DNA of 64,000 nucleotides from Epithemia pelagica (lineage: Eukaryota; Protista; Bacillariophyta). Shown piece after piece: positions 178 through 23,458 of the stretch (the stretch's first letter is position 1; every line of letters begins with the position of its first letter). The stretch covers positions 372,001 to 436,000 of the forward strand of contig OX337242.1 of NCBI GenBank assembly GCA_946965045.2. The letters run 5' to 3'. The translations under genes were made by a program, and so were the position numbers. The notes under the pieces were generated by a model. It searched no databases, had not been told where the DNA came from, and saw nothing but the letters and a program-made list of their open reading frames with translations.

Positions 178-1203
178 GTGTCCAGCACTTCCAGAGATTC
201 CGATAGTGCATTCTCCAACAAATCCGCGAGGTCGAAAAATTCGGATGCAGGTTCGAAAACCAAAAAGAAGACTCGACGAAACAACTCAATGGACACAGCG
301 TCTTCGAAATCGTCTCAGAGCTCGTCCGATTCAATCGCTAAACATCAGGACAAGCAACAAGAAGAACCTCCTCTATCTGTCGGCGCAGACTCACCAGCAA
401 CGGTAGAACCGTCGGACCGAAAGACGAAGCGCCGGTTTGCTGGTGGAAAACGTTCCGAACAAACTCAAGAGAAAGGAGGCCGTCGTCGATTGAAAGGCTT
501 TCTACGATCCGCCGTGGGACAAAAGTCGAACAATAACAATACTCAAACCATTGACAATGCCTCGGGACCCGCCAACCACAGCAACGAAATGAACCTGGAT
601 GACAAAACTGGTTCCAAGGCTGCAGAGAACACCCGCAGTGCTTCTCCGGTCGAAGATGTCCCTCAAAAGACCTCATCAGCTGCGAATGACAGTGAAAGTG
701 ACTGTTTTAGTGGTGTCGTCTCATCTGAAGAAGATGATAAAGACATTGTCCCAGACGCCGATACGAATCAACTAGTGTTATCAGTAAAACAAGTGAGATC
801 GTCAGCGATTGAAATCACCACTGCCGATTCGATGGACTCAGAGCTAGCGTCAGCGTTGCTGGAACAATCATCGTCCCGACTGACGGAAGTATCTTCCATG
901 GGAGCTGACTCCATGATGGACGAGGAAGTTGATGCGTCCTCCTGGAAAGTCAGCGTTCTAGACGGAGATACTTGGAACGCTGCAATCGACTTGTTGGGAA
1001 TATCCAGGGTGATGGGATGCGAGTGTCAAGATGACACGAGTCAAACAACCCCCGTAAATGCACAATTCTTTGACAATGCCATGACGGATTCGGCCCGTCA
1101 TGTCATGTCGCCCTGGTGGAATGATGAACGTCGATCCCGCCGAAAACCGTCCTCACGCAAGAGCCGTTCCAGACATTCCTATTCCGCATATGACCGAAAC
1201 TAA
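178..1203 (+). CDS. Hypothetical disordered S/K/D/E-rich protein (341 aa) with a conserved C-terminal DxWxxAxxLLG...TPVxAxFFDxAMxxSAR segment; start uncertain
   Basis: Long ORF with a GTG start (an upstream exon is possible); residues at 967-1104 align with the C-terminus of the 10340-11581 gene. Confidence 0.75.
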   Translation: MSSTSRDSDSAFSNKSARSKNSDAGSKTKKKTRRNNSMDTASSKSSQSSSDSIAKHQDKQQEEPPLSVGADSPATVEPSDRKTKRRFAGGKRSEQTQEKGGRRRLKGFLRSAVGQKSNNNNTQTIDNASGPANHSNEMNLDDKTGSKAAENTRSASPVEDVPQKTSSAANDSESDCFSGVVSSEEDDKDIVPDADTNQLVLSVKQVRSSAIEITTADSMDSELASALLEQSSSRLTEVSSMGADSMMDEEVDASSWKVSVLDGDTWNAAIDLLGISRVMGCECQDDTSQTTPVNAQFFDNAMTDSARHVMSPWWNDERRSRRKPSSRKSRSRHSYSAYDRN

Positions 1204-2102
1204 ATACCATCAACCATGTAACCAGATAATAATGTATACACATGTTTCGTGCCGAATTCCTCTGGAAAAGCGCTAGCATATTGTACGGTACACTAGACAC
1301 GGAGACTTGTCGTAGAGAGGCGGCACGTATCATGTATCATGTATCATGTCGTCCATTGAATGCACGATACATAACGCGACGTCATCGTTTGATTTCCTTT
1401 TCAACTTACCCATGGGACCCGATGAATAGGAATGAGTACAACAGGTCGATTTTTTCCCAGTTCCCTGAATAATCGGTAGATTGTTGTGGGGGAGACCTGC
1501 GTCCTTCTGGGGGTAGGCCTATCAGAAATCCAGAAGCAGAACTGCCCCTTTACACCGACGCATGAGCCCCCAAATCCGCCAAACATGTGTGTGACAGAAG
1601 TGACAACGCACAATGGCGCATCGGAGCTGCTCCATGTCGACAGATACCCACAACAGACGATACGTTGATTCCTCCTTTCAACGCTCTGACATCAACCGTT
1701 GAGGGGACAGCCAAAATCGTTGCGTCCTCGTTCTGTCATAATATGTTCCGTGTGCGAATTAACAACAGTTGAAATCATGACAGTGTTCCAGTCTGTTGAT
1801 TGGACGGAGCGCACGGACGCCCTTCAAGACATAGGACAAGCCCCACCCAGGGTTCACACGGCAACGCGCAACGTACACCAACGAATGCCCACAATTCTGA
1901 GAGGCCTATCCCAACGGCAAGAAATGGTATCACCTTCCCCGTGTTACGAATTTTTGAGGTGTCCTTTAGCGAGTCTCTGTGCACATCGAATTGTCTTGCC
2001 GTGTTGTTCTCTCCTTGTAAGAACCAACCCACATGAAACTGTGCTTCCATTAATACAACAAATCCCTCCTGATTCGGGCTTCCCTGCTCATGGTACATCA
2101 TC

Positions 2103-5100
2103 ATGATGAGGCGACATCGTTGGAACGATGATCTACAGCAACCACAGTTGCAGGATCGGACAATGTCCAAGACGGAGAGCTATCGTGACAGTCCGCAAAT
2201 CCACGTTGTCACATCCGACTTGTCGTCCCGGAAATCTTCTCGCCGGTTGACTCCCAAGAATAACAGCAGTAGCCCAATGAGAGCTTCCATGACGGAAAAG
2301 ACAGCTCCGCAGCAAAGTTCTTATGCCGAGCCAGTGATTGTAAATACAGATTATGCTGTTAGAAAAGAACGAGAGAAAAGCCGACTTCGGCCCATCAAAC
2401 CACCACCAGCCCATCGCAGAACAAGAAGTACAGGTGCTGGAATGGCTAGGGCGCACAGTCACCTGGTGTTTGCCCCTGATGCTTTTGATCAAGAGGGGAA
2501 TCAACTAGAGCATCATCAACAGCAACATGACGAGGAACGAGAACCACGAGATGAACCTCAAGCGAGAAAAGGGTCACCAAAACGGAAATCAAAAGACACG
2601 TTCAAGCCAAATCCCATCGCCCTCAAGAGATGCCCAACTCCTGTAATGGTAGTTTCCATGAATGACGCCGACAAGAACCCACCAAGGGCCCAGAGAGGCA
2701 CCGCTGGTCGGAAGAATAAGGGTGCACCGGTAAAGCTTATTCCAGCAATCTATAAGGAACCCACTTTCCTTGCAGTGAACAAAAAGAAACTCAAGAATCC
2801 TGCTATAGAAGCTAAGCGACAACAGAGTGAAGACACCAAACCCACTTCGTTTGTTCGCTTCACCAAGGTTGCGAATGAGAAACGTTTTGATGAGCACTCG
2901 GTACCTTCCCAGATTTCGGAGGACGATACGGCAGAAGTGGTACTCAAGTTCATGCAATCGGCAGATGATCGGAGCGTTAGCACAATCGATTTTCACGAGT
3001 ATCTTAGTCCCACAATGATGCAAGCGGCAGTCGATGATCTCATTGATACCGCTGGAAATTTCATGGACCATGCATGGTGTACGAGCCTTGCCACTCCTGC
3101 CGTGATGGCGACACCTTCACAACCATCCAAACTGGCTGAAAGCAGACAAGAGAACATGATCTCGATGATAAGCTCAAGATATTCCTGTGGGGACAATCCA
3201 GTAATGGATGGTATGAGAGAAGACATACCGGATGTGGACCACCTTTGTCGCTCCATGGCCGTGGGTATCTCCTCTAGCACGGCCATTGAGCAGTTCTCTT
3301 CTCAGGGAAGAGAAAAAGATGGCAAGGAGAAAGACGACGCAAATGCGTTGGAAGATTTGCTCGAAGCACCGGAAGAAGAGATTGTATTCCAGGGAGAAGG
3401 GACCAGTCAAGAAAAACGAACGGATATGGATCAAGACGAAGAATTGGATTCCGTCTTGAACCAAGATGCGAGACCAACTGTTGACACCGAACAAACGTCC
3501 CTGGGATCTACCAAGACTGCTCCGGAGGATTCGTCCACTCCCATTAAACGCTTCTTCTCTGCGGTTGGCCTGTGGAGCACCTGGGCGAATACACTGACTT
3601 CTGATACTCAAGAAACAGCCACAGAAACAAAACTTGAACCAAAGGAGGGAGACAAACATGAACCCCAAGATGCCAAGGCCGAGAAACCGGATGAGAAACG
3701 TATCTCGTCGGACGATGAACCGAAGAGCGCTGAAACCGATATCAAAGTAGATGGCGGTGCAGAAGATGAAGGAACGCCCAAGCAAGATGGCAATGATTCG
3801 CACGACCAGGAACCGGAGCATGGAGATGGCGATGCCTCTGCTGCCAAATTCAAGTTGCAAGCACCAAAACTAGCCAAAGGACCGCGGACAACGGACCGCA
3901 AACACAGTAATCTCATCAAGCAGAGAAAATCACAAGACTCACAGGACACTCTCAGTACAAAGAAGAAGAAAAGTAGTGGATTCCTAGCGGCCAGTAAACG
4001 ATTCAGTAACATACGTCGCCAATTGAGACAAGACAAAAAAGAACCGGCCGAGAAGAAAGCCAAAGAAGGGTCTACATCTTCGAAGAATGAGGAATCGAAA
4101 ACCCCACCGAAATCTATGGAAAACAATGAACAAGGTACGGGTTCAACTCTGAAGCAAGCAACCGATGAAGGCCTCAAAGTGAATGAGAACTTGCTGGTCC
4201 AGACAAACGAGGGACTTGTGGAATCAACTCAAGAGAACAATTCAAAAGTGGAACGAGGGCATCTTGGCCCTATGGACCGGGCGGTTGATCCAGGCAAGCA
4301 ATCGATTCCGATACTCCGAGCATGGAGGCGATTGAATCGAACAAGCTATTCTGTTCTGAACGAACCAGTGACAGACTTTTCGAAAACAGACACCAGGCAC
4401 CACGACCATTTGACAAGCGAAGGAGTATCAGAGTCCAATGAAGATTCCTTGGTGGAGCACGTACATGATTTGGCAACGAAGAGCGATATTGCTAGTCTCG
4501 AAGATGACGAGTGGAGACCTAATGTTAGCTCGGAAGGCGAACATGAAACGGCCAAGTCACCAAACCGTGAATTTACATACACAGCAGAATCTGGCCCCGC
4601 AAAACGCGAGGAGGAGTCGGACGTCTCCGAAATTCCTGACCCTCCGGAAGGGATGCCAGGTCTTGATGGCTCACCGAAACCATCTTTTGGAACAGAGTCA
4701 TTCGACGCGTGTTTGAACGAAAATGAAACCCGAAGACACGACGCTTCACCAGATCAATCCTTGGAATTGAATCGCGATCAGTCACCTGTTCCTGAAGCAA
4801 TCGACCCAGAACGTTTCAAATCTCTTCCTTCTGCTGAACATGAAGAATACGACAAAAAGGCGGCGAAGGGATATGTGGGTTCATCTTGTACAAGTGAAAA
4901 TCAAGAACCCTTGAATATCACGTCGAAACAAGAGCCCGACCGTCCCATGACAAAAGAATCGGTGTCGGATTCGTCTCGTGGGGATATTCCTTCTTCGAAA
5001 TCAACTTGTCAACCTCCCAAATCTATTCTCCGCTCTCCAACCCTGAAAGAAGATTTGGGAGAAGGAACAACGTTCAAGTCAAACGCCACAGGTGAAATTA

Positions 5101-5660
5101 CACCCAGCTCACTGAATGTTTCTGACCCACCCAAGGATATGATTGACAGTATCGAGGATAGTACACATTCAGAACACGAACTTTCCCTTCAGGCAGATCG
5201 ACCGTCGGTTACACCGTATGATGCCGGACATGCGCATGGGACAACCAATGAGAGAAATGGCTTCTTTGCCCGTAGACAGCGGACGATGGATTCCCGTGCT
5301 TCTGTTCATAGCGGCGGCCGTGCAGCACCCAATTCTGGTGCTATTCAAGATCAGGCAAAGTCAAGTGGATCATTACCGTCAAAACGCGACGGTAAGCTTT
5401 CTCACCATCTCTTGACATCGCCATCGCAAGACAAAGGCGAGAAAAGTCTGTCTGTTATGATTGACATGGAAAACACAGTACTTTTTGATATGGACCCTTT
5501 TGTGTCGGATGAAAGATCACACTTTTCCTACGTGTCCTCGTTGGATTCCTCCTCCCTCTTTCTCATGAATGAAACTGAGATCAGTGAGACGTGGAAGTCG
5601 GCTGTTCACGAACCACTGTACGACGCAAAACCGAAGTGGGTGCGAAGAACGGCAAGTTGA
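2103..5660 (+). CDS. Large hypothetical intrinsically disordered protein (1185 aa)
   Basis: 3.5-kb uninterrupted ORF with an ATG start; S/E/K/D/P-rich; no recognisable domain or signal peptide. Confidence 0.8.
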   Translation: MMRRHRWNDDLQQPQLQDRTMSKTESYRDSPQIHVVTSDLSSRKSSRRLTPKNNSSSPMRASMTEKTAPQQSSYAEPVIVNTDYAVRKEREKSRLRPIKPPPAHRRTRSTGAGMARAHSHLVFAPDAFDQEGNQLEHHQQQHDEEREPRDEPQARKGSPKRKSKDTFKPNPIALKRCPTPVMVVSMNDADKNPPRAQRGTAGRKNKGAPVKLIPAIYKEPTFLAVNKKKLKNPAIEAKRQQSEDTKPTSFVRFTKVANEKRFDEHSVPSQISEDDTAEVVLKFMQSADDRSVSTIDFHEYLSPTMMQAAVDDLIDTAGNFMDHAWCTSLATPAVMATPSQPSKLAESRQENMISMISSRYSCGDNPVMDGMREDIPDVDHLCRSMAVGISSSTAIEQFSSQGREKDGKEKDDANALEDLLEAPEEEIVFQGEGTSQEKRTDMDQDEELDSVLNQDARPTVDTEQTSLGSTKTAPEDSSTPIKRFFSAVGLWSTWANTLTSDTQETATETKLEPKEGDKHEPQDAKAEKPDEKRISSDDEPKSAETDIKVDGGAEDEGTPKQDGNDSHDQEPEHGDGDASAAKFKLQAPKLAKGPRTTDRKHSNLIKQRKSQDSQDTLSTKKKKSSGFLAASKRFSNIRRQLRQDKKEPAEKKAKEGSTSSKNEESKTPPKSMENNEQGTGSTLKQATDEGLKVNENLLVQTNEGLVESTQENNSKVERGHLGPMDRAVDPGKQSIPILRAWRRLNRTSYSVLNEPVTDFSKTDTRHHDHLTSEGVSESNEDSLVEHVHDLATKSDIASLEDDEWRPNVSSEGEHETAKSPNREFTYTAESGPAKREEESDVSEIPDPPEGMPGLDGSPKPSFGTESFDACLNENETRRHDASPDQSLELNRDQSPVPEAIDPERFKSLPSAEHEEYDKKAAKGYVGSSCTSENQEPLNITSKQEPDRPMTKESVSDSSRGDIPSSKSTCQPPKSILRSPTLKEDLGEGTTFKSNATGEITPSSLNVSDPPKDMIDSIEDSTHSEHELSLQADRPSVTPYDAGHAHGTTNERNGFFARRQRTMDSRASVHSGGRAAPNSGAIQDQAKSSGSLPSKRDGKLSHHLLTSPSQDKGEKSLSVMIDMENTVLFDMDPFVSDERSHFSYVSSLDSSSLFLMNETEISETWKSAVHEPLYDAKPKWVRRTAS

Positions 5661-6216: not shown

Positions 6217-7011
6217 ATGAAAGAAACTAATGTACAGGTTGCAATCTTGAGCGAAGGGCATTCGTTTGAGCTTGTCAAACTCAATCCTCATGGCATGAAA
6301 AGGCTTACCACGAGCGCTACTCGCCCCATACAAGAACGCTTTGGTACCAAACAAAACTGGCAGCAACTACTTCAGCTCCAAACCCTCCGCGAGAGCCATC
6401 CAGTCATTTCCAAAAAGGACCTGCTGCATTCTGTCAGAATTGCATCCATCGAAGATAGAAATGACATTGGAGAACTTGTGTCCATCAATGCACGAGAAAA
6501 ACGGGACGGTCATCCATCTCGCTCCAAACGAAACAAAAGTAGCCCGATGTGTTCACGCAAGACTACCAACACCCGTGTGCCAAGACTTCCACCGAAAAAG
6601 CGTCCCCAGAAACATCAAACGTTACAACCATTCTCACAAGGAGAAAAATTGCCTGTACTGAGAGAACAAGTTCACGAAGACGAATCGGTCAGCCCCGAAC
6701 CTTTCATGTTCGAGAGAAATGATAACGATGTACGAGATGACGTTGATGCAGCCTCGCATTATTACGATGACGATACAATCAGTACCAGTGGCTCCATCTA
6801 TGCTCGAAACAATGCGAGCGCTACCCCAGAAGTCGTGGTCGAAATTCCTTCCACCTGGAAACAACAACAACAACAAGACGACGACGAAGAGTCCGAGGAA
6901 AACTTTGTGGCCGTTCTGAGCATGGAAGAGGCATTCGAACTTGTCGAGATTAGTCCTACCATGAAAGCTCAGCTGATGATGCAACGTCCCCAATTAATGG
7001 AGGACAGATAA
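6217..7011 (+). CDS. Hypothetical protein (264 aa) with a C-terminal VAVLSMEEAFELVE motif
   Basis: ATG-initiated ORF; the motif is shared with the 19778-23458 protein. Confidence 0.7.
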   Translation: MKETNVQVAILSEGHSFELVKLNPHGMKRLTTSATRPIQERFGTKQNWQQLLQLQTLRESHPVISKKDLLHSVRIASIEDRNDIGELVSINAREKRDGHPSRSKRNKSSPMCSRKTTNTRVPRLPPKKRPQKHQTLQPFSQGEKLPVLREQVHEDESVSPEPFMFERNDNDVRDDVDAASHYYDDDTISTSGSIYARNNASATPEVVVEIPSTWKQQQQQDDDEESEENFVAVLSMEEAFELVEISPTMKAQLMMQRPQLMEDR

Positions 7012-7568
7012 CCATGATGTAGCAAACACCGATTGGATCGGCATTGGCTTTATCATTTGCTGTTCAATTGTAACCCCAATATTGTGTGTTAGAACCTAAG
7101 TTACTTTATCTCATGAATGCTTTTCTATCATTCGCCGAATCGTTGAGCACAAACTAGGATCATGACAATGATGTAGCATTCAGGATCACAGACTCTAGGA
7201 AAGCGTAGGCAATTTGCCTGTTGGACATGCAGACAGATCATTTCTGTAGAATCCATCTTGTTCTGACAACGGGCCGTTGGAGCAGCTAGTTGCGCCATGA
7301 AAATCACCCTGTGCACGTGGGTTCCATAATCAAAGAACTGCGCCATACCACCTCGACACATGGACAATTTGTGCCTCAAACTCGTGTCTCTATTTTTTCC
7401 CTCAGAAACATCAAACACAAGAGGTGTCATCAGGATGACCAGAAGTATCCACCCATACTTTCACAGTTTTTCGGACAAGACGGTTGATGGAAGGCAACTT
7501 TGAAAACGTCAATCACTCAAACCAAGATTGTTGCTGAAGCAAGACATTGACGCTGTCACTTTACTAAC

Positions 7569-8114
7569 ATGAATGAAATCAAGAACGCCCAGCGAAAACT
7601 GCCAACAACACCGAACAAGCGCATGTCACCACGACCGGAGACACCTGGCTCCAATCGATGGACCGGTCAACGAACATGGCCCATCTCCGCAAAGCAAGTT
7701 GACCGTGACCACGGATCTAGTGATACTGACTCAACGGATGTGAGCTCTCAATCCCATGACGACGACAGTTCAAGGAAATCCCAGGACTCCAAAGCCACGG
7801 GCACTTTCTCCACCTACAGACAGGATCATCGGAAGGAAGATACTCTGTTATATCACATGTACTTAAAGGCTGAGATCGAGCAGCTGAGTCTTATCTCAAG
7901 ATTTGAGGACAAAGAGGAGTTCCTGGATATAGATGTGGCGATACAATGGATATGCTTTCAGTTAAAAGGATTCGATGAAGAGACAGAGGAAAATGATCTT
8001 GTGATAAGCGACAGCAGAAGCGTTGCTCAAAGTACCAAAGAACGAAGTCATGAAGCGGACAATATTCCGGAATATATTTCATTTCATCGGTCTGACGCCG
8101 GGAGGGTCTTCTAA
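7569..8114 (+). CDS. Hypothetical protein (181 aa)
   Basis: ATG-initiated ORF with a disordered N-half and a helical-looking segment YHMYLKAEIEQL...DVAIQWICFQL. Confidence 0.6.
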   Translation: MNEIKNAQRKLPTTPNKRMSPRPETPGSNRWTGQRTWPISAKQVDRDHGSSDTDSTDVSSQSHDDDSSRKSQDSKATGTFSTYRQDHRKEDTLLYHMYLKAEIEQLSLISRFEDKEEFLDIDVAIQWICFQLKGFDEETEENDLVISDSRSVAQSTKERSHEADNIPEYISFHRSDAGRVF

Positions 8115-8726
8115 CGATGGCCGATTGCCTTCGTGATCTTCTGTTAAGAAACAAAGCTGTTCAATTCGTTTTAGGTAATGAATATTAGTTTCGCTCCTAG
8201 GGGTTGTGTGTTTGTTCTTCTACGATCTGATGCGTCGTTCCAAATGACGACGGAAGGAGTTCACATTGCAAGGTTGATCTCAAAAAGAATACCTCGCATT
8301 GATAGCAATGGTAACGGCCATTCCTTTTCGTATTTTGTTCGTTCTTCATTCTTCAGTGAGAGTCCCTATTGAATGCCAAAAAGCAATCGCACCTATCTGT
8401 TGCAGTCATTCGACGGCGAACAAAGCCAATACATCGCAAAATTTTGTGGAAAATGTGCGCAACGGTCAAACTTACCGTAAGGGATTGCGCGCCGCGCGCT
8501 CAGAATCACGCCAAATAAATAAGTGTCACACCCGGCGCGTGAAAAATTACTTTGTTGCACTACAGGCGCGCCAACGGTCATGAGTTCCGTCAGAGTTATG
8601 CGCCACGTCCGCGCACAGACATGCAGCATATTCAAGACTCAGTCACATCCTCTTCATACAATATACTACTTATAGAGTGGCTATTTGGCGATGTCATAGT
8701 GCGCGCGGTGCAGTTCGTTTACGGGG

Positions 8727-8908: not shown

Positions 8909-9475
8909 TTGAAACAGAGCCATAAGAGGGTCTGGTATTGTGGTCCAAAGGACTTGAAGGAAGGAGAAGAAATCATGGTCAAGTCGGTTTTCGTTCCACC
9001 ACGAACAGGACGACGAATAATCTACAAAGAGGAAAACAAGAGCAGTAAAATAGGAAGCAAGAAATCCAGCATGAAGAACAAGAACTACAACCATACCTCC
9101 GACAACCGCGATGACACCGAGGAGACGGAAGGCCTGTTTCTTCCTCCAAGCTTTGACCGTGGAGAATCTGTCATCACCACATCAATCGACGATGACGGAC
9201 TCGACTACGAACCTCGGCATATTGAGAAGTACCGAGAATCATCGATGTTCAACTCCTATGAACGCTCGATAAAGAGGACGGTACAGTTCCAGTATGACAA
9301 AGACGCTGACGACGACTCTCTATCCGAATATTCCAAGTTGTCAGAGCCCTTTGCCGCCTCCCTCAATATCTTGAGGGATACATGGCTGACTAAAGCTGAG
9401 ATTTTGGGCTGCACGGACGACGTTGAGAAAATGGAAGACGAAGACTCTTCCAAGCGGACTTTCTGGCTATTTTGA
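8909..9475 (+). CDS. Hypothetical protein (up to 188 aa) with KRTVQF and LRDTWLTKAEILGC motifs; start uncertain
   Basis: ORF with a TTG start (first ATG near 8975); motifs are shared with the neighbouring genes. Confidence 0.65.
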   Translation: MKQSHKRVWYCGPKDLKEGEEIMVKSVFVPPRTGRRIIYKEENKSSKIGSKKSSMKNKNYNHTSDNRDDTEETEGLFLPPSFDRGESVITTSIDDDGLDYEPRHIEKYRESSMFNSYERSIKRTVQFQYDKDADDDSLSEYSKLSEPFAASLNILRDTWLTKAEILGCTDDVEKMEDEDSSKRTFWLF

Positions 9476-10339
9476 TTGCGTCAATGGAAAGGGAAAACCT
9501 TCACCTCCCACCATCAGCTTTCGTCCTGGGTAACCTCATCATTGATCCTCAACTGTTCAATTCCATATACGCTACATTTGATATTGTCATGCATGTTCCT
9601 TTTTAGCCAGAAGTATATAAGTTCGTGTTATTATACATTTCGAGTATCGCCTTATTGTGAATGAACATTGGTTAAACATTGTTAGCCGTTCACAGGACAG
9701 GGATTGCTCAGACAAAGATAAAGTACGATGGAAATGTTCTTTCAGAGACGATTTGACTTGTACCGTTTCGTTAAGACCGACAACAGTTTAAGCTAGACAG
9801 GGGAGTAGCCCGTTCCGCCTCTAGACATGTAGAATAACCATTGGGCTTGAACCTTCATGGGACATTGGGATTTGGTGATTGTGAGTCGAAATAATTGCCC
9901 CATGCGTTGGATTGTACACATATTGTACATCAGCTATCAGCTCGTACACTACGAACTTATAGTATTCTCTAGGAGTAAAGAAAAGATGTGTTTTCCTGTC
10001 TGTGTCTCCCCACGCGCGCACTTTTCTCCCAGTTACTTTCTCTCCAGATCTTTTGGGCCGCGTGCGCAATCGTTCTCCTCCTCCTATCCATCTTTCTAGA
10101 GAGGGCATGGTGCACTGCGACGTCAAGGTTCGCAATCCAACGGAACCACCAATCTCAACGCCTGTTGTTCGCAGAAATTCTCCCAACAGCAAAGGCTTGT
10201 ACAAGCTTGTAGGAGTCTCCAACTAAAAATTAAGAAACGTCACGCACCAGAGGTCACAAAGCGGCCGACCACAAGAACAACAAGAACAACAAGAAGAAAA
10301 CCTCATTATTTCTTCTTGTAAATCCATCAGTGTACCACA

Positions 10340-11581
10340 ATGCAGGAATCATCGGCCCAACCAAAGCAAACATTCTCCTCCTCCTCACTTCTTGAAACAA
10401 ACAAGAACCGTGCCAGTCGAACCGCCATTGCCAAGAGTCTTGGCAAGAAGAAGAACAAAACCAAGAGTCGGTCGTCGGCAGAAACAAGTGCCACTGGAGA
10501 CCTACCAACCGATCTGCTCAAAAGACAACGGCAACAAAAACGGCTTTCCTTGGAATGGATCCGTTCCCAGGCTACCAAGTTGGCGACACGGAAACATCCC
10601 AAACGATTGGCCGTTCTTGCTGTCAGTGTACGTGCGAGGAGAGAGAAAGAGAGAGAAAGTCTACGATATTTTGAATGGTTGGCGGAAATTCTCACACAAA
10701 CGATTTTTTCTTGTTTGCTTGGCTCTCTCGTCATGCTTGTGTGTATGTGTATGTAACGCCAACAGAAGAGAAACAAGGATATCTTGCAGCAAGAGTCGAA
10801 TGTCACGAATCAAACCTGCAAGACGACTCGTCCCGACGCATTGTCTCTGTTCATCCCCACTTCATCCGACAAGGACCATGCCACACCTACCACAGGCGAC
10901 GAGGTGACAACCAAACCACGCATCGTCACAGACCCGGAGGCATCCAAGGACACGGTTGAGCCAGACCAAGGCGAGGCCCCTATTGTCTCCCTGCAGGGAG
11001 ACGACGACAACGACGAAAGAGTGAAACAAGAGGCGGCCCTTAAAATTGTTGGATTCCTCAAGAAATGTTCAGCTCTGAGTCGTGACGACGCAGATAATGA
11101 CAGCAACACGGATTCAGAGGATTCGGATTCGGATTCGGAGACTTCCAGTTGGTCGGGACAAATGGAACAAGCCATCAAACGGGTGGCCTTTGATGATGAT
11201 GATGATGAGGACTACGATGACACGGACCAAGGCACGTGTGATTACAATTTGAACTTGACCGACGATGACGACGACACTCGGGGAGAACTGGTTCAAGCCG
11301 CATCGTCGTACGAATCTCTGAACGAATCGGATACCAAAGACGAAGCGGAGGAGGAGGAAGAATCGCCCTTTTTGAGAGATGCGTGGTTGTCGGCCGTCGA
11401 ACTCTTGGGCTTTTCCAAATATGTCGCCGAAGCCGAAAACATGAGTCAATTGACACCAGTCGATGCCGCCTTTTTTGACAAGGCCATGGATCAATCGGCT
11501 CGATACATTGCCGGAGACTTTACCACGACCCCCAAACCCTTGCGAGACCCGCCGCAGTCCATTGCCTTTCGTCGATTCTAA
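10340..11581 (+). CDS. Hypothetical acidic protein, predicted two exons (10340-10627, 10790-11581; about 359 aa); paralogous C-terminus to the 178-1203 gene
   Basis: A phase-0 GTACGT donor at 10628 and a TTGCAG acceptor ending at 10789 join two ORFs in frame; contains KRVAF and LRDAWLSAVELLG. Confidence 0.7.
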
Positions 11582-12160
11582 CCCACACACAATTCTTGTC
11601 CATCGACCTATCTATATATACAAACAAATTCATCCTGTATTTGTCTGTTGAGGGAATCTCTCTATAACATTATGTCTTACTATATAGCTCCATTCATTCT
11701 TTTCTTCTCTAGTGTCTACGCTGTCATTCGATCCATCGAGACCGGAGAGCTCCCTCTCCTTCTTGCTTGCGCCCTCTGTTAGTTTTTTTCTGAGTTTGTG
11801 AGGGCAAGTTTGGGGGATGCAACGGATGGACCATAAGAAGAGTTTGGGGGATGCAACGGATGGACGATACTTATGTGCAATTATGGGTGATCGATTCGGT
11901 GCTCGGACTCGTTAACTCGCGAAAGATATGGGCCCTTTCGCCAAAGTGCGTTACCTACATCAGTCCGCTGTCACAAAATGCGTTAAGTGTTGTGTGGCGC
12001 GCGTCTCTCCTTCCATCAACGCATGATGAGGAATGAGGACTGCCGCTCCTTTCCTCGCACCAGAAAGTGGAGACACATTCTCTCTCATTCATTCTTCTCA
12101 ACCGACCTGAGATTCCCCAGAGGTGGAGGCAGAGCAGCATCGTCCACTATCATTATCATC

Positions 12161-13198: not shown

Positions 13199-14109
13199 AA
13201 AGTGGGGTTTTCCAAATGAACTGGAGGGGAGAGAGGCACCATTTCCTCCTCTTGTGTTTGGGTGGCTTGGAAACACAAGGTGACCTGTCCAGGAACCATA
13301 GTGGGTAGAGTTCTAGAACGGGCAGTTTAGTATTCTTTTGCATAGAGATAATACTCCTCTAGGAAGAAGTCTGTCGTCGAGTACCAGAGGTAGCTCTGCT
13401 AGAGAGAAGCAACGCCTCCTTGTTAAGCAACGCCTCCTTGTTCTAAAGTGGGGGTGCCGAGCCGTTGAATCTCATCTCCCCAATATCTTGCTTCGCGCAC
13501 CTCTTGTTTTCCCCAAGCACCAAAACACAGAGAGACATGTGACCATCTCCATCGTCGCACTTTGGTGTTGGAGATACAATACACGAGTCTAGGAGTTGGT
13601 GGTTGGCACTGCCGTGGGCAGTTTGCTCGAACCATTGCCCTTGGCGGCGCACCTCGTCCGTGTGGCATTATTTCGAAATGTATCTATTTAAGGCCCCAAC
13701 GTCCCCCATAAATCGAATTTGGATGGCCTCTCACGACTCGAGACGACGGGCTTGCGATTCTGGATAGTCGTATTCGTAAGCTGCATCCTCTCTCCCACAG
13801 AACTACCTAAACCAGAACGTTGGATGGATGGATTTGGGGAGAGACGCTATGATGATTGGAGAATTGAAATGGACCCGTTGATGATTCCGAGTGCAAAATG
13901 CCTTGTTTTCACCTCTTACATGTGCCAACCATCCAACGCGTCTTTTTTGTGTGTGCGGCTCACTGCGTTTTGGAAATATGGAACGATCCAAATTCACACA
14001 CACAGCCTCTAGTTAATTCCGTCCGACACTCTTCATTTGTTGCCGTTTGCATCCGAACAGCCGACGAATCCTCACCTCCCTCCACGACGACAACAAAACA
14101 ACGACCAGG

Positions 14110-15801
14110 ATGCGGACGACGACTGAGAATCCTCCGCCCTTTTTGGTGACGACGATGACGGAACGGGTGGTGCAGACCATTTCGACCACCGATTCCATTG
14201 AATTGGTCCACGAACCACCCACAACAACCACAAGTTCCATGGAACGCTCCGTCACGTCGTCATCTCGTTCTCCTCCAAGTCAACGAGTGTGGACCAGTCG
14301 TCGTCGCTGGTTCTCCACCACCACCACCAAGGACACCAAGGACGACAAGGAGGTCTCGCCGAACGAAGCAGCAGCCGCAGAGGATACCAGCAACATGGTT
14401 CAAGTCTTGGACCCCACGCCAACGACTCAACATGACCACAAGGACGATCACCAAGAAGCACAAGAGACAGATCCCCAAGACACAAAGGACATCGACAATG
14501 ACGACAATAAGGTCATTGTTTGGGACTCTACCCCCCAAGCTTCGCCCCACCCTTCCACGTTGTCGTCGTCCATTGTCATTTTGGATCCGAGTCCAGCCAC
14601 CGAGCCATCCCCGCAGGAGCCAGTCGACTGGAACGAGTCGTCACCCCAAGAACCACAACAGCACCATGGTCGTCGCGTGCCACGGCGTTCGAGTATTACC
14701 AAATGGTCCTTGTCATCGTCGTCGTCTCGTGACGACACAAAGGTGACTGAGCTCCCCGAGAACAACAGCCACCAAACTCAACCGCCGCAGCAGCAGCATT
14801 CCGACGGTACTACGACTAGGGAGGAGGATGCCTCCACCGTGGCCATTTCCAACCAAACGAACAACAAGAAGCAGCAACCCGTGACTCTGCCAAGCCTCCT
14901 TCCCACGAAAGAGACGGTCCGTGGCCAGAATCAAAAACAAAAGAAGAAGAAGAACCAGAGGAATTCGAAGTCCACACCCAACCAGAACCTACGCGTCGAG
15001 AACGACGGCAACCCCAACGACACCAAGAAGCTCCAGGAACAAGACTGCATTCAAATCTTTGAAGCCACCCACCAGCCGTCCATGGGATCCCCAGTAGTAG
15101 TACCATCACCCGACACTCCCATGCCGAACCAGCGACTGCAAAACACGAGCATTCGCAGTCATCATCCCACAAGCATCACCACCAAGACTCGTTTGGAACC
15201 ATCCATCTCCCAAAAACTTGCTTGTGTCGCAGCTCCCTTTTCTTCCAAAAAGACTCGAGGAACCACCAAGAGTCGGAAAACGTCCCAACAGTCGACCCAA
15301 GACACTCCTTCTCCTCCGTCGTCGTCGTCTTCTTCTTCTTCCAAAAGTCTGCAAGAAAAATCGTTGAAACAGCCAACCTTCGTTCCGTCTTCCAACTCGG
15401 TTTCCCTCCACAAACGTGTTGCCCACCCCAAGATTACCAAGAGTTGGATCGATGAAGACGACGTCAAGGAAGTGAAATTCGTCGACGATGACGACGACTG
15501 GATGGGTGGTGACACGGGAGAACGAAAGTCCTATTTGGCCGATGCCTGTATCGTCGGAGCCGAACTCTGTGGTGTTTCCACCCACGATATTGAACACTTG
15601 TTGGAAGATACCCTGCACGATATGCGACATGCCAAACAAATGGAACTCGAAGCGGCCGAACGATACAAGAAGAGCAGTCATTATCGTGCCCTGCCGCCGC
15701 CGTCGTCGTCGTCGTCGTCATCGTCATCCTCCTTGGTGGCCAAACCAACCAGCACCAACAACAACATCAGCGCCATGTCCCTGTTCACTCTGCAAACTTG
15801 A
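14110..15801 (+). CDS. Hypothetical T/S/Q-rich disordered protein (about 563 aa from the first ATG) with KEVKF and LADACIVGAELCG motifs
   Basis: Long ORF 14047-15801; first ATG at 14110. Confidence 0.75.
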   Translation: MRTTTENPPPFLVTTMTERVVQTISTTDSIELVHEPPTTTTSSMERSVTSSSRSPPSQRVWTSRRRWFSTTTTKDTKDDKEVSPNEAAAAEDTSNMVQVLDPTPTTQHDHKDDHQEAQETDPQDTKDIDNDDNKVIVWDSTPQASPHPSTLSSSIVILDPSPATEPSPQEPVDWNESSPQEPQQHHGRRVPRRSSITKWSLSSSSSRDDTKVTELPENNSHQTQPPQQQHSDGTTTREEDASTVAISNQTNNKKQQPVTLPSLLPTKETVRGQNQKQKKKKNQRNSKSTPNQNLRVENDGNPNDTKKLQEQDCIQIFEATHQPSMGSPVVVPSPDTPMPNQRLQNTSIRSHHPTSITTKTRLEPSISQKLACVAAPFSSKKTRGTTKSRKTSQQSTQDTPSPPSSSSSSSSKSLQEKSLKQPTFVPSSNSVSLHKRVAHPKITKSWIDEDDVKEVKFVDDDDDWMGGDTGERKSYLADACIVGAELCGVSTHDIEHLLEDTLHDMRHAKQMELEAAERYKKSSHYRALPPPSSSSSSSSSSLVAKPTSTNNNISAMSLFTLQT

Positions 15802-16062: not shown

Positions 16063-16116
16063 TTTCACGTGACTCAGGTTCATGAGGGCTGACGGACAGA
16101 CTTTTCACGTGACTCA
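16063..16116. promoter_or_regulatory. Two copies of tttCACGTGACTCA (overlapping G-box and AP-1-like bZIP sites)
   Basis: An exact 14-mer at 16063-16076 and 16103-16116, about 500 bp upstream of the ATG at 16607; function inferred from consensus only. Confidence 0.45.
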
Positions 16117-16606: not shown

Positions 16607-18742
16607 ATGGTGGGAAAACAATTGATGCGGTCCCATCAAAGGCCCTCCAAGAACAACAACAAATTGGGACGTGCCGTCCACAACAAGAAGCCGTTCCGAC
16701 CCAAGCTTGCGGTAGAAATTCAAAGCTTTGGAGAAAAATCTGAACTCGTCCAACAATCTCCTCGAGGAGGAATTCCGGTAGCCAATGAGGAAGAGGATGT
16801 CATTAAGGTCTATCCCAGTACTCGTTCCGTTGCTTCCGCTTCTACGACTACGACGACTCGAGGCGATGGCAGTCAAACCTTGAAAGCTCTTCAGGCGGCA
16901 CAGCACAGCAACAACCACAGTACAACCACAAGGACTGGAGGAGCCGATGCAAGTTTGACCTTGAAGTCTCTGCCACAGAGCAAGAGTCAAAAAATGGCCG
17001 CCCATCAGAAACGATCGAGTACCAACACTAGCACCACCAAGATGAGCGGCACCAAATCCGTTGCATCCACACCGTCCGCCGCCTCGTCTTCCCAGCTAGT
17101 ACAACCAAGAAAACAAAAACTTCGGACGGTAACACCGCCCAAAAAGAGACGACCTCCGACAACGCCTGGATCCACGTCGTCGTCGGCAGGGGCCTCCTCC
17201 ATCATTAGCTCCGATGCCGTCTCTCGAATGACCGAGGATTCGTCCATTGAAAGTCGTCGAGATTTGTTTCAGGATGCCAAGCAATTGTACCTCTTGTCGG
17301 TGGCATTGAAACAGGAGCAGCAACAACAACAACAAGCAGAAGACCCCAAGGATTTGGATGGGCGAGCGTCTGTCGTTTCCAAATCCTCGGCGGCATCCTC
17401 CACATCGTCCCGACGGTCGGTCTCACCAATGAAAAAATCCGACCCCACTTCCCTGGTCGTGCTCAATCCCAGCCCCCAGGGAGCCAAATCCAAATATGGC
17501 AGTACGAACAGTAGTAGTGTCCCGATGGACGATTCGAATCGACCCCTTTCTCCGCCTCGTCGCACCTATGGCGGTGGCGGCGGCATGTCCAATCTGCCGT
17601 TTTTTCCCGAACAGCAGCAACAACAACAACAACAGCGAAGGATGATTTCCGATCAGCGATTGGTGGGAGGAAGCAATCTCAAGGAACTTTTATCGGCCTT
17701 GCACAATGGATATTCGGTTGAAACCATTGATGCTGGTGCTGCCTCCAAGAACAACAACAACACTGAAAATGCCGCCCAACAACCACAAGCGCAAACGTCC
17801 AACAACAACAACAAAGCGTCCACAAGCTGGTATTCTTGGCCCTTTTCCTTTTCGGCCTTTCGATCGGACAAAAAGAGTTTTTTTGGAGGAGGCGGAGACC
17901 CAAATGCGGAGAGTTCCACGACCAACCAAAAGACCACCACAGAAACCACTGTGGCCTTGTTGCATGCCGAAGAAACAGTCGAAGTCGTCAAGACGGAAAT
18001 TGCTTCGGAATCACTCGTGGTCTTGGAACCCAAACGAAGACAACAACAGCAACAAGAACAACAAGAAGAGAAACAGAAACTTGCCAAACCGAAAAAGAAA
18101 AGGAAACAACCAAGCAGAAAGCCTCTTTTGGGACTGCCCAAACAACGTTCGTTGGAATCGAGTGGTGGTTCCTGTTCCACACCTCTCTTGCCAGTCGTCT
18201 TGGAAGAAGTAGACGAAGAAGAAGGTGTCACCTTATCCATGGTCGACGAGGATCCATCGTCCAGTACTGGTAGTACTGGTGGCGGCAAGGGACGACCCGA
18301 GGATGCTTCTCCTCCTCCAACAACAACAACAACAACCGCAGAGGAATCCGAACGGGCGACCACCACCACCACGGCCATCGAATGTACCTTATCCACTACG
18401 GAGGAACACGAACCACAACAACAAGCCACTACAACTACGAATGGGATCCTGTCTCCGGCACGCGAAGAAAGACATGATCATGGTCCGGACACAATTCTCT
18501 GTTGCGTACAGCAGCAACAACAACAACCACAAGACGACAACCATCAGGATTCGGGCAATACTACCACAGCCAGTACAACCAGCAGTCGCAACAACAGCAA
18601 AACGGACAACAACAACAACAATAATAGAAGTACTGGTCCACAAACGAAAACAAAACTGGGACGAGTCACACGATCCCTGATTACAGATTCCAACGATGAA
18701 GATGATGAGGAAGAGGAAGAAGAGGAAAAGGCTTGTTCGTAA
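16607..18742 (+). CDS. Hypothetical S/T/Q/N-rich disordered protein (about 711 aa)
   Basis: Long ORF 16565-18742; first ATG at 16607. Confidence 0.8.
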   Translation: MVGKQLMRSHQRPSKNNNKLGRAVHNKKPFRPKLAVEIQSFGEKSELVQQSPRGGIPVANEEEDVIKVYPSTRSVASASTTTTTRGDGSQTLKALQAAQHSNNHSTTTRTGGADASLTLKSLPQSKSQKMAAHQKRSSTNTSTTKMSGTKSVASTPSAASSSQLVQPRKQKLRTVTPPKKRRPPTTPGSTSSSAGASSIISSDAVSRMTEDSSIESRRDLFQDAKQLYLLSVALKQEQQQQQQAEDPKDLDGRASVVSKSSAASSTSSRRSVSPMKKSDPTSLVVLNPSPQGAKSKYGSTNSSSVPMDDSNRPLSPPRRTYGGGGGMSNLPFFPEQQQQQQQQRRMISDQRLVGGSNLKELLSALHNGYSVETIDAGAASKNNNNTENAAQQPQAQTSNNNNKASTSWYSWPFSFSAFRSDKKSFFGGGGDPNAESSTTNQKTTTETTVALLHAEETVEVVKTEIASESLVVLEPKRRQQQQQEQQEEKQKLAKPKKKRKQPSRKPLLGLPKQRSLESSGGSCSTPLLPVVLEEVDEEEGVTLSMVDEDPSSSTGSTGGGKGRPEDASPPPTTTTTTAEESERATTTTTAIECTLSTTEEHEPQQQATTTTNGILSPAREERHDHGPDTILCCVQQQQQQPQDDNHQDSGNTTTASTTSSRNNSKTDNNNNNNRSTGPQTKTKLGRVTRSLITDSNDEDDEEEEEEEKACS

Positions 18743-19777: not shown

Positions 19778-22700
19778 ATGCAGGAACCATCAGCGTTTCC
19801 ATTCACCATGATGAAAGGAGCCAAAGAATTCTTGGCCTTGCCTCCCTCGTCGTCTCTTGCACCTCCCTTGTCCAAGGCTTCTATTGTGGCCGCCTTGGAT
19901 GCCTTGGATGCCAGGATGCAGGAGGCCACCAAGAATACCAAGGAGAAGCTTTGGCCAGCAGAGCCACCATCACAAAAGAGTAACGACAAAACGCCGAGCA
20001 GCAGTGAACCAACGGAACCAACGGAACCAACTAGCAGCAGCAATCAAAACAACAACAACAACAGTTTCAACTTGTCGTCGTATGCCGATTCCAATGCCAT
20101 GGCGACCTATGTGACGGATCTTTTGGCCGCTGCCAAGGAACTAACCTCCAACGAAACGAATGGACAACAACAAGAGGATTCGCCAAATAATATGAATGCT
20201 CAAGATCACTTGGCGGCCCTGTCCAGTGCCTTGCACGATTTGCTTTTGATGGAACAGAACAAGGACGACAGCAAAGAAGACCACCAAGAAGAACAGCAAC
20301 CACAAGACGACGGCCAACAGGCTGCGTTATCCCAACAAGAACAACAAACACCTCAACAACAAGCAAATGATACCTTAACCAATGCTCTGAGTGATTTGCT
20401 CTTGTTGCAATCTCCTCGTCATGCCTCCTCCTCCATTACAACGACGGGTCGAACAACACCAACATCAACGACATCCCTGGTGCCAGTAAAGAGACGAAAG
20501 AAGCTTGCTCTCCGTGCCGCCACTTCTGTGGAAAAGAAGAACAAGAAGAATACCAACAAGGAAAAAGCTAGCACATACGACGACGACGACAAGGCCAAAC
20601 AAGACGACAGGAATACAAAGAGTACGAGTGCTGCGTCTCTTTATGATTCGGAGGAAACTGCTGCTGCTTCTCACGTACACAATAGTGACCTAATGACCGC
20701 CATCGACCAACAACATCCCGAAGACGAGGAGTGTTCTTATTATTTGGCACAAGACGTGGAAATGGTCAAGACCAATACGTTTGAAAGCAAGGATCAGCAA
20801 CCATCCGTTGTGTTGGCGAAGGAAAAGGCAATCGTCAAGGCATCACCAGCCTTCTCCAATCGCAGGTTTCCTTCTCGTCGCGGTCACAACAAGAAAAAAG
20901 GCACGTCGTTTCGAGAACCACGATGGAGTGCCAAGAAACAACCGAAACAACAACAACAACAACAACAACACGTGCCGACCGCCGCCGAAGCACATCCCTT
21001 GCATATTTTACAAGATGATGGATTTTCGGTGGAAATGATTACGGGGGAAAATGAACAAGAAGCAGCCTCGCTCATTCTCCAGCACCAAAAAGAACTGGAC
21101 GAGCAGTCCCTTGCCGTGTCTTCCAAAAAGAGGAGCAGCAGCAACAAGAACAACAACATTACCAAGTCTGCAGAACCTCCAGTGGATACTATGGCATCAG
21201 AAGCGGCAGATACGAGCCAACACTCTTCCTCCTTCACGGAAAACGTGGTACAGAACGCAGCATCTGCAGCTATGACCCCAGAAGAATGTATTGATCCTCA
21301 AGGACAAGAGCAACTACCTGATGAACCATACAATCAGGAAACTGAAGCCCAAGTATACACGGAAGAAGCCGAAGTAGACACTGAAGAAGCTGAAGTGGAA
21401 AAAATCAATGACTCAAGTGGTGAAAGGAACGACAACCAATCCGTTCCTCCCACCTCGTCGTCCTTCCCGCCCGTTGTCGATAAAATGCCTTCGTTTTCGA
21501 ATGGAAGGCAAACACCCGTTTTGGATGTCGTGGTCCTTCCTGGCAGTGACAGCACCGACAATAGTACCTTGGAGTATAGTGCGAGCAAATCGCCACGGCC
21601 GTCCAACACCTATCAGCCCCTCGTCATGGTGGAACCCAAGCAAAAGGTCATGGTGGAACCCAAGCAAAAGGTCATGGTGGAACCCAAGCAAAAGATGCGA
21701 CAACGTTCCAGCTTGCCACGAAGACCCAGTATGTTGGGGTCCATTCGAGGAGACGGCGGACAAAGCCGCAACAGCTCCTCCTCCAACAGTCGTCGGTCCG
21801 AAACTGGGCCGTTGCCTCCTAAGAAGAATATGCGTGTTTTGAAAATGTCCATTCGTCGTGCCGGAGAGGAAAAATTGGTCGAATCCTTGAACTCGAAACG
21901 GACGCCGTTTGCGGAGGAATCGGCGGAGGATCGCAATTCTCAATATGTCATGGTCTTTGAGCCACAGCAACAGTCCTCACGGAAAAAGAAAGTCGGAGGA
22001 GGAAAACAACTCCGAGCAGAAGAAGACAACTCCACAAAGTCGAGTGATTCTACCAATCCTTCCTCTCAAGGGTCCGATCAAGGATCGGCTGCAAGTCGTC
22101 GACTGGTGGTCCTGAATCGGAGACGTACCCGATCCAGGCGTGGTCCGTTTATGCGTTCCGTACAGCCCGATGGAAAGCTATCGGGATCGAGTCATCATCG
22201 ACTTGAAATTCTTTCCGTGTCCCCATCCACAAACAATGGAAATTCCGAGTCGTCCTCTAGGAGAAGGGTGGTGCAGGAGAAAAAGCGACCGGGTGTGACA
22301 ACGCTCGGCAAGAAGGATGAGGGTGCCGTTGCGGTTCTAAGTTCGACAAAGTCCTATGAAGTTTTCAATGTGAATAACAAAACCAAGAAACTTTCAAACT
22401 GTCTTGTTGTCTTTGAACCAAAAAATAAAAAGGACGTACAAGAACCCAAAACGTACAGGGATGTATATGAACCCAAAACCAACAAGGAGGATGTCTATGA
22501 ACCCAGAACCATCAAGGAGGATGTCTATGAACCCAAGACCAACAAGAATGTGTATGGACCCATGACCAACAAGGAGGAAGCCTTCGAGTCTTCTCCACAC
22601 ATCAACAATGGTCGATCTCAGAGAATGAGAAGAATGGAGTATGCCAATGACCTCTCCATTGGGTCTTCCACCACAGCAAATGCTACCACGGGAACTCGAA

Positions 22701-23458
22701 TGTCGGCCGAATCCCAACAACAAAACTCCTCCTTGATGATGATTCATCCCAGAACGAACAAAAAGTCCGACACCTACATCCTGGAGGAGCAAGGTTCCGA
22801 TACATCTTCTGGTATCTTGGAAGAAGATGCCATGGCATTCAATGGCAGCATGATGGATAAGGAAACTGAAGCTGAGGAACCATCCGGTCATCATGCATCC
22901 TCAATTATGGGTATCACCAGCAAGCGATCGGAACTGGGTTCCATCCTCTCGGTGGTGGAAGAAGGAGAAGAAACGGTCGAGGAAGAGGCGGATGACGAAG
23001 CAGTACCAGAGACGAAGAACAAACGTGGAGCACGACGAACCCGTCAGCAGCTTCGAAAGGCACAATCCGAAGAAACGGATTTGGACGAGGCTCTTGTGGC
23101 TGTCATTAGTATGGAAGATTTGGAACTGGTGGACAATGATGATGATGAATATGGAGGAGGACGTCCCACAACCATTAGTGATTTCATTTTCACCACGGTA
23201 GAATGCTTTACCTGTGCCGATGAAGTGGAAGACGATGAGGTGGTGGATGATTTCAGTCGCATTACACCCATTGGAAACCACGAATTTGAAGAAGCCATGT
23301 CGAGACAACCTACTCTCAAGGGTCAGCCACCAGCTTCCATATCCGACTTTATGGAACGCCGTCGTCGCCATCGACGCAACAGTTTGGGATCTGCCGATGA
23401 CAGCCGAAGGTTTCCGTTTAGCGTTTCGTCCGGAATCAGCTCTCTCGGGTTCTACTAA
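19778..23458 (+). CDS. Large hypothetical disordered protein (about 1226 aa) with internal VMVEPKQK and DVYEPKTNKE repeats
   Basis: 3.7-kb ORF 19739-23458; first ATG at 19778. Confidence 0.8.
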   Translation: MQEPSAFPFTMMKGAKEFLALPPSSSLAPPLSKASIVAALDALDARMQEATKNTKEKLWPAEPPSQKSNDKTPSSSEPTEPTEPTSSSNQNNNNNSFNLSSYADSNAMATYVTDLLAAAKELTSNETNGQQQEDSPNNMNAQDHLAALSSALHDLLLMEQNKDDSKEDHQEEQQPQDDGQQAALSQQEQQTPQQQANDTLTNALSDLLLLQSPRHASSSITTTGRTTPTSTTSLVPVKRRKKLALRAATSVEKKNKKNTNKEKASTYDDDDKAKQDDRNTKSTSAASLYDSEETAAASHVHNSDLMTAIDQQHPEDEECSYYLAQDVEMVKTNTFESKDQQPSVVLAKEKAIVKASPAFSNRRFPSRRGHNKKKGTSFREPRWSAKKQPKQQQQQQQHVPTAAEAHPLHILQDDGFSVEMITGENEQEAASLILQHQKELDEQSLAVSSKKRSSSNKNNNITKSAEPPVDTMASEAADTSQHSSSFTENVVQNAASAAMTPEECIDPQGQEQLPDEPYNQETEAQVYTEEAEVDTEEAEVEKINDSSGERNDNQSVPPTSSSFPPVVDKMPSFSNGRQTPVLDVVVLPGSDSTDNSTLEYSASKSPRPSNTYQPLVMVEPKQKVMVEPKQKVMVEPKQKMRQRSSLPRRPSMLGSIRGDGGQSRNSSSSNSRRSETGPLPPKKNMRVLKMSIRRAGEEKLVESLNSKRTPFAEESAEDRNSQYVMVFEPQQQSSRKKKVGGGKQLRAEEDNSTKSSDSTNPSSQGSDQGSAASRRLVVLNRRRTRSRRGPFMRSVQPDGKLSGSSHHRLEILSVSPSTNNGNSESSSRRRVVQEKKRPGVTTLGKKDEGAVAVLSSTKSYEVFNVNNKTKKLSNCLVVFEPKNKKDVQEPKTYRDVYEPKTNKEDVYEPRTIKEDVYEPKTNKNVYGPMTNKEEAFESSPHINNGRSQRMRRMEYANDLSIGSSTTANATTGTRMSAESQQQNSSLMMIHPRTNKKSDTYILEEQGSDTSSGILEEDAMAFNGSMMDKETEAEEPSGHHASSIMGITSKRSELGSILSVVEEGEETVEEEADDEAVPETKNKRGARRTRQQLRKAQSEETDLDEALVAVISMEDLELVDNDDDEYGGGRPTTISDFIFTTVECFTCADEVEDDEVVDDFSRITPIGNHEFEEAMSRQPTLKGQPPASISDFMERRRRHRRNSLGSADDSRRFPFSVSSGISSLGFY
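21623..21694 (+). repeat. Perfect 24-bp coding tandem repeat x3 (VMVEPKQK)
   Basis: gtcatggtggaacccaagcaaaag occurs three times in succession. Confidence 0.95.
22430..22580 (+). repeat. Imperfect 27-30-bp coding tandem repeat, about 5 copies (DVYEPKTxKE)
   Basis: Repeated gatgt(a/c)tatgaaccca(a/g)aacc units. Confidence 0.8.

Follow-up and report, generated by a model that had tools for sequence, protein, structure and literature searches.

Short Conserved Modules in a Tandem Cluster of Disordered-Protein Genes in the Diatom Epithemia pelagica

Introduction

Diatoms of the genus Epithemia host a nitrogen-fixing cyanobacterial endosymbiont, the diazoplast; they are among the few eukaryotes with a permanent endosymbiont of this type, and the contribution of the host is an open question. 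Arrays of disordered proteins that are confined to one lineage and linked by short motifs are, as a general kind, known. Here we analyzed a 64,000-nucleotide stretch of the Epithemia pelagica genome (hereafter, the window), in which positions 178-23458 are filled by long plus-strand open reading frames (ORFs), and describe a tandem family of genes for disordered proteins in which short modules alone are under constraint. The family is detectable only in Epithemia and matches nothing described.

Three described systems offer points of comparison. In the Chlamydomonas pyrenoid, disordered proteins are linked by a Rubisco-binding motif. The Epithemia family resembles these proteins in carrying one short helical motif, a would-be common docking label, on otherwise unrelated disordered chains, but the motif sequence, the organism, and the partner differ and the Chlamydomonas genes do not form a tandem array. 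In the alga Braarudosphaera bigelowii, host proteins imported into the endosymbiont UCYN-A (the nitroplast) carry a C-terminal targeting extension called uTP (UCYN-A transit peptide; PMC12176269). The likeness, compared by description only, lies in a C-terminal motif block found on otherwise unrelated host proteins of an alga with a Crocosphaera-related nitrogen-fixing endosymbiont. Epithemia, however, is a separate host lineage with an independent endosymbiosis, and its module sits on disordered orphans rather than on enzymes and is not always terminal.

The third system comes from the same genus. Of six host proteins found to be enriched in diazoplasts isolated from Epithemia clementina, three belong to OG0000250, an orthogroup that is domain-less, multi-copy, and common only to E. 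clementina and E. pelagica; two of the enriched members have gene numbers 18 apart, and one is duplicated on another contig (Frail et al. 2025, PMC12377750). The family reported here was likewise detected in these two species only, lacks domains, and has paralogs at neighboring gene numbers and duplicates on other contigs. The match is one of descriptions, and it differs in that no motifs were described for OG0000250 and its localization was by cell-fraction enrichment only (PMC12377750).

Results

Two Short Modules Recur among Proteins That Do Not Otherwise Align

The window corresponds to positions 372001-436000 of a contig in a 60.5-Mb assembly, almost certainly chromosome 15 of E. pelagica UHM3201 (PMC11167328), and we added 40 kb of sequence to its left. 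The ten gene models of the initial annotation are called g1-g10, and the ORFs of a second cluster s1-s6, while u1-u6 and u4b denote the seven cluster ORFs that lie farther left, outside the window; negative coordinates count leftward from the window.

The first module lies in the C-terminal part of the proteins. It has a pair of short amphipathic helices of acidic character, DxWxxAxELLG (helix 1) and TPVDAxFFDxA (helix 2), which are joined by an acidic linker and usually followed by a polybasic tail. It is present in eight ORFs of the main cluster and in three to four ORFs of the second, which comprises six co-oriented minus-strand ORFs for disordered proteins at chromosome 15 positions 184267-204207. 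The conserved terminal block is common to 11 E. pelagica proteins and at least four E. clementina proteins that are otherwise unalignable, although in s1 the module is internal rather than terminal. A two-strand motif of 19 residues, hVAhLSxxExFELVKxxP (h, hydrophobic), forms the second module and has shorter relatives of the VVLxP type. Its carriers are u1, u2, u3, g3 (two copies), g9, and g10 (two copies). Since g10 bears both types of module, it ties the two subfamilies together.

All-versus-all BLAST without correction returned many weak matches that were compositional. After composition correction, three types of similarity were left: that of the C-terminal modules, that of a short beta-like element at the C-terminal end of u1 and u2 (the two leftmost genes), and one segment common to u4b and the E. 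clementina protein P0016. The proteins had been described as not alignable overall, and this stands, as the corrected comparison aligns short modules only. The paralogous C-terminal modules in the two clusters likewise bear out the tandem family that the initial annotation had postulated.

The modules were then modeled as profile hidden Markov models (HMMs) and used for genome-wide scans. Searched against the whole genome in six frames, the C-terminal HMM gave 10 matches, all on chromosome 15, with eight in the cluster and two at 185-195 kb; for the two-strand motif, eight of the nine genome-wide matches fell inside the cluster. A model trained solely on three upstream genes found two further matches in the genome; one was the motif at the N terminus of g3, and the other lay in a minus-strand ORF flanking the cluster. 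Counts of the motif patterns exceeded those in shuffles of the same proteins, and motif density was higher in the cluster than in about 44,000 amino acids (aa) of other ORFs of the genome. As the patterns were drafted after the cluster had been seen, the comparison of pattern counts is biased, and the HMM scans provide the cleaner test.

These results bear on the simplest alternative, namely that the genes are unrelated orphans, or not real, and that their motifs are shared by chance or through biased composition. The compositional nature of many weak all-versus-all matches agrees with it, as do g2, g4, and g7, which have no detectable motif, g7 in addition containing an in-frame stop. Opposed to it are the HMM scans of the whole genome, the retrieval by the three-gene model, and the comparisons with shuffled proteins and with background ORFs; the conservation of the module in a second species and between twin assemblies (below); and ORF lengths of up to 1447 aa. 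We consider this alternative highly improbable for the locus as a whole: the evidence largely rules it out for seven models (g1, g3, g5, g6, g8, g9, and g10, each with an HMM-detectable module), and it may still apply to g2, g4, and g7. The motifs recur far above chance, with HMM matches nearly confined to the cluster, but the proposal that they link all ten models is not supported, as three models have no detectable motif.

The Gene Run and Its Members

The cluster had been presented as ten consecutive plus-strand genes. The orientation was confirmed, and the co-oriented run proved longer, about 17 ORFs from -18361 to 23458; model 1 is the tail of a longer ORF, and g7 consists of two ORFs. 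Beyond the cluster, same-strand runs did not exceed four ORFs. The longest cluster ORFs reach 1447 aa, and about 70% of the residues of the cluster proteins are disorder promoting. The claims that the proteins have neither a recognizable folded domain nor a signal peptide were upheld: a Pfam scan of 10 + 10 proteins gave no meaningful match, and no signal-peptide-like hydrophobic stretch was seen by inspection at the N termini of the ten models. The suggested intracellular location is consistent with the lack of signal peptides. The features of the ten models are as follows (scores from the family HMMs).

1-1203, plus strand: g1, the last 401 codons of an ORF of 1074 aa with its start at -2021 (L006:479-3703).
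916-1167, plus strand: C-terminal module of g1, with DxWxxAxxLLG, acidic linker, TPVNAxFFDxA, PWW, and basic tail; 98.5 bits.
2103-5660, plus strand: g2, a 1185-aa disordered ORF with no HMM-detectable module and a weak look-alike near the C terminus.
6217-7011, plus strand: g3, a 264-aa ORF with a two-strand motif at each end (6232-6288 and 6901-6957; 27.3 and 26.5 bits).
7569-8114, plus strand: g4, a 181-aa ORF without a family motif, uncertain as a gene.
8909-9475, plus strand: g5, with [KR]x[VI]xF and an acidic tract from 9275-9289 and the helix 1 region at 9329-9460; 46.8 bits.
10784-11581, plus strand: g6, with KRVAF and a poly-acidic tract from 11177-11191 and the full C-terminal module at 11330-11578; 90.8 bits.
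11987-13198, plus strand: g7, two same-frame ORFs divided by one TAA, without a family motif.
14110-15801, plus strand: g8, with KEVKF and poly-D from 15466-15480 and a diverged helix 1 region at 15511-15690; 42.2 bits.
16607-18742, plus strand: g9, a 711-aa ORF with one two-strand motif (17945-18001; 19.5 bits) and two VVLxP-type strands.
19778-23458, plus strand: g10, a 1226-aa ORF with two-strand motifs at 22322-22378 and 23090-23143 (21.1 and 14.9 bits).
23132-23350, plus strand: C-terminal module of g10; 75.6 bits.
21623-21694 and 22442-22578, plus strand: internal tandem repeats of g10, a perfect 24-bp unit in three copies and an imperfect 30-bp unit in 4.8 copies, respectively.

Model 1 as first drawn (178-1203, with a GTG start) represents the last 341 residues of the 1074-aa ORF, which begins 2021 bases to the left of the window; the database protein P0003 is identical to g1, and P0012 is identical to g5. 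Helix 2 is missing from g5. The two parts of g7, at 11987-12484 and 12500-13198, are acidic ORFs in the same frame, and the in-frame TAA at 12482-12484 may represent a nonsense allele, mark a site of read-through, or divide two separate ORFs. In g10, each repeat unit encodes a short hydrophobic-Glu-Pro strand motif, which indicates that the motif itself is undergoing amplification.

The start of g6 (10784-10906) is GTG here and ATG in its twin copy, and no ATG precedes codon 127 in this sequence, which makes the start in this haplotype tentative.

Relatives Are Found within Epithemia and Conserve the Modules

A search of the C-terminal profile against 1.84 billion representative proteins gave 17 matches. 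Three of them (P0010, P0013, and P0018) were rejected as family members since they appear to be repeat or low-complexity matches; the other 14 were this genome's own ORFs, copies from a twin assembly, and five E. clementina proteins. The twin copies are 88-99% identical and lie on a single European Nucleotide Archive (ENA) contig of 1,592,775 bases. Such near-identical copies, all on one 1.59-Mb contig, fit a deposited alternate haplotype of the species.

In E. clementina, the members have neighboring locus tags, with 008789, 008792, and 008809 on one contig and 019880 and 019882 on another. They span 20 locus tags (ACA910_008789 to 008809), with near-identical copies on other contigs, and judging from the order of the tags, the gene order is compatible with u4 ... 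g1. The counterpart of g1 is P0014/P0021; the C-terminal modules of g1 and P0014 are 45% identical over 86 aa, and the two proteins have in common a basic N-terminal start, a duplicated TH-x-[DE]-FF-[LI], the C-terminal module, and nothing else. Both ortholog pairs, g1/P0014 and u4/P0016, align at motif islands only.

No other diatom was among the profile matches from the 1.84 billion representatives, and a profile search of the Protein Data Bank gave no matches. A protein atlas search with g6 returned no usable match, word-based protein searches with g6 and g3 retrieved their own or twin copies only, and a metagenome locus scan with the C-terminal module produced no confirmed match. The word-based search with u1 returned nothing, its own copy included, probably because low-complexity candidates swamped the search. 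The family had been called old; relatives were detected within Epithemia only, and we do not retain that description.

The query used did not recover P0017, a 400-aa family member of the twin assembly, from the primary assembly; this may represent presence/absence variation between the haplotypes.

The twin copies allowed us to locate the sites that change. Between g10 and P0007, there were 67 differences over 1226 residues and none in the last 136 aa; between s6 of the second cluster and P0008, four of the 132 differences fell in the last 137 aa. Similarly, g3 and P0019 showed three differences, none of them inside the two-strand motifs. Overall, the C-terminal modules and two-strand motifs were unchanged between the twins, whereas the linkers varied. 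The rapid evolution that the initial annotation had proposed is borne out by twin copies with no more than 88-96% identity and by E. clementina relatives that align at motifs only, and the proposed confinement of constraint to motifs is borne out by these counts. The family is a young or fast-diverging one, tandemly arranged, with constraint on the short modules alone.

One alternative concerns the diazoplast. Under it, the family would be the diazoplast-enriched, Epithemia-only orthogroup OG0000250, and the two-helix C-terminal module would act as an address or docking label that brings fast-evolving host proteins to the endosymbiont or its envelope. The half of the diazoplast-enriched host proteins that falls in this orthogroup (PMC12377750) agrees with the idea, as the cluster family is equally Epithemia-only, domain-less, multi-copy, and clustered, with E. 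clementina copies on other contigs; the uTP found in the host of UCYN-A (PMC12176269) is an earlier example of a conserved C-terminal label. The two were matched by description only, however, 1,109 families are Epithemia-specific, and nonspecific enrichment could not be excluded by the authors of the study (PMC12377750). The cluster proteins further lack a signal peptide, their polybasic tails resemble nuclear signals more, and the module is internal in the paralog s1. Both the identity with OG0000250 and the labeling role of the module therefore seem quite improbable to us. Were they true, the tandem family would be the first host-encoded machinery specific to the young diazoplast endosymbiosis, and a family with named motifs and coordinates allows a cheap comparison with the orthogroup.

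The Modules as Candidate Docking Sites

The structure of the C-terminal module was predicted with AlphaFold2 for g6 (window 11327-11578) from 16 aligned sequences. The model contained one helix at residues 14-26 and a second, separate one at residues 47-62, with a predicted local distance difference test (pLDDT) score of about 80-85 and a predicted template modeling (pTM) score of 0.28. Two independent helices with such a pTM argue against a compact fold, and the prediction points to a pair of binding helices rather than a domain. Both helices and the linker between them carry a net acidic charge, and the tail a basic one.

Membrane anchoring through the C-terminal helices was considered and appears unlikely, as the net acidic charge of helices and linker argues against binding to acidic membranes.

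Upstream of the helices, a [KR]x[VI]xF site (test pattern [RK]-x(0,1)-[VI]-{P}-[FW]) with a poly-acidic run precedes helix 1 by 25-125 residues in u6, g5, g6, and g8. About half of the members with the C-terminal module have the site; in g1, g10, u5, and the members of the second cluster, it is either missing or degenerate. Partners of protein phosphatase 1 (PP1) are typically disordered, with acidic residues after an RVxF docking site, and the DxW subfamily could accordingly represent regulatory or targeting subunits of PP1, with [KR]x[VI]xF as the RVxF dock and the acidic tract and helices as secondary contacts. Like PP1-interacting proteins, the family members are disordered and show no sequence conservation otherwise, and some of them have the candidate site followed by acidic residues. 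The spacing of the site in the four proteins is in keeping with this model, the E. clementina proteins P0011 and P0015 have looser versions at a comparable distance, and the density of the RVxF pattern combined with an acidic run is about 6-9 times that of background ORFs. The pattern is short, however, and was defined after the proteins were seen; the E. clementina instances fail its stricter form, and no second PP1 motif was seen. The site is also missing from about half of the members, and in P0001, the twin copy that is 96% identical to g6, a Met replaces the key Val of KRVAF. We know of no counterpart among PP1 docking motifs for the two helices, which are the most conserved parts of the family. 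Given this balance, a PP1 function is unlikely.

A comparable proposal can be made for the hydrophobic strand motifs, whose VAVLS, VVLEP, and FELV strands could bind by beta-strand addition as SUMO- or Atg8-interacting motifs, making the proteins poly-SUMO or autophagy adaptors. SUMO-interacting motifs (SIMs) follow the pattern h-h-x-h beside Ser or acidic residues, and the Atg8-binding LC3-interacting region (LIR) has the form [FWY]xx[LIV] after acidic residues. Matched by eye in alignments, the strands fit the general SIM and LIR patterns, and they are repeated within proteins. Both patterns are very permissive, though, and not diagnostic, and neither explains a fixed two-strand unit with a following Pro. 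We see only a slim chance that this proposal is correct.

Myb-Core Boxes in the Spacers

The non-ORF DNA of the cluster contains the hexamer CAACGG, a Myb-type core, at 1.93 per kb. Non-ORF DNA elsewhere has 0.38-0.55 per kb, a background taken from the second cluster, the flank on the left, the remainder of the window, and fifteen 10-kb pieces drawn at random. The boxes extend to the consensus YCAACGGAY; this 9-mer was not enriched in the whole window, and the enrichment is limited to the 6-mer core in the spacers. Within the ten-model stretch there are 12 boxes, paired and lying 30-650 bases upstream of the start codons of six genes:

1696-1917, unstranded: two CAACGG boxes in the spacer before g2.
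7267-7279, unstranded: two overlapping, inverted CAACGG boxes before g4.
8460-8577, unstranded: two CAACGG boxes before g5.
10138-10531, unstranded: two CAACGG boxes before g6.
11820-11859, unstranded: two CAACGGATGGAC boxes before g7, with a spacing of 34 bases.
13462-13880, unstranded: two CAACGG boxes before g8.

In plants, mitosis-specific activator (MSA) elements with the core AACGG are bound by MYB3R factors and mark genes of the G2/M phase. That core is contained in YCAACGGAY and is enriched in the cluster spacers, which makes shared Myb control of the cluster genes plausible. The likeness to plant MSA/MYB3R control ends there: in E. pelagica, the mitotic genes Ndc80, MAP65, and BUB1/Mad3 have no CAACGG within 800 bases upstream (three genes, starts taken from ORFs). 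A role of the box as a mitotic signal in G2/M is therefore not supported by these three genes. The TPX2 Pfam model had no match in the genome, and [ST]P, [ST]Px[KR], KEN, D-box, and basic runs were no denser in the cluster proteins than among the genome's other disordered ORFs.

A Tandem Family of Putative Adaptors

The cluster encodes a tandem family of nonsecreted disordered proteins, restricted to Epithemia as far as can be detected, that retain short modules, and we consider it probable that these proteins act as multivalent adaptors or scaffolds. The modules would fold only upon binding a partner, and the long linkers, which evolve freely, would thereby be tethered to a single shared partner protein or to a few of them. 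It is this reading of the modules as docking sites that leads from the architecture to multivalent adaptors of a shared partner. Many of the cluster genes would probably be cotranscribed through the Myb-type CAACGG boxes in their spacers.

Several observations weigh against this interpretation. The HMM scan for both modules detected neither in g2, g4, or g7, and these three may be unrelated to the family or may not be genes. CAACGG is absent from the spacers before g1, g3, g9, and g10 and is not enriched in those of the second cluster. The two-strand motif was not found among the E. clementina proteins compared, and its AlphaFold2 model, with pLDDT of 80-88 and pTM below 0.3, received no secondary-structure call. 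Finally, the adaptor role is one we infer from the architecture.

Setting aside any link to the diazoplast, the locus offers a clean natural case of proteins that conserve only short, putative binding modules, and it comes with comparisons between haplotypes and between species as well as a shared Myb-type promoter box.

Flanking Sequences

Left of the window, u2 contains a 306-bp unit in 3.0 copies with 98% identity (L004:4358-5280; -15642 to -14720), which at this identity indicates a recent internal amplification. The one Pfam hit above the cut-off on u2, Cu-oxidase_2 with 24.9 bits, falls on this acidic repeat and was judged spurious. Translated from its first ATG (L005:2955-3060), u6 has a hydrophobic N terminus ending in Ser-Ala-Phe and recalling the signal and plastid presequences of diatoms; this stretch may only extend the ORF upstream. 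A look-alike of the two-strand motif, matched by both motif models, lies in the ORF that borders the cluster on its left side (-19784 to -19068, minus strand). On the right, the neighboring ORF (23738-26095, minus strand) encodes 785 aa with a low-complexity N-terminal part, and its C-terminal end resembles an RNA-recognition motif, which we note as a candidate.

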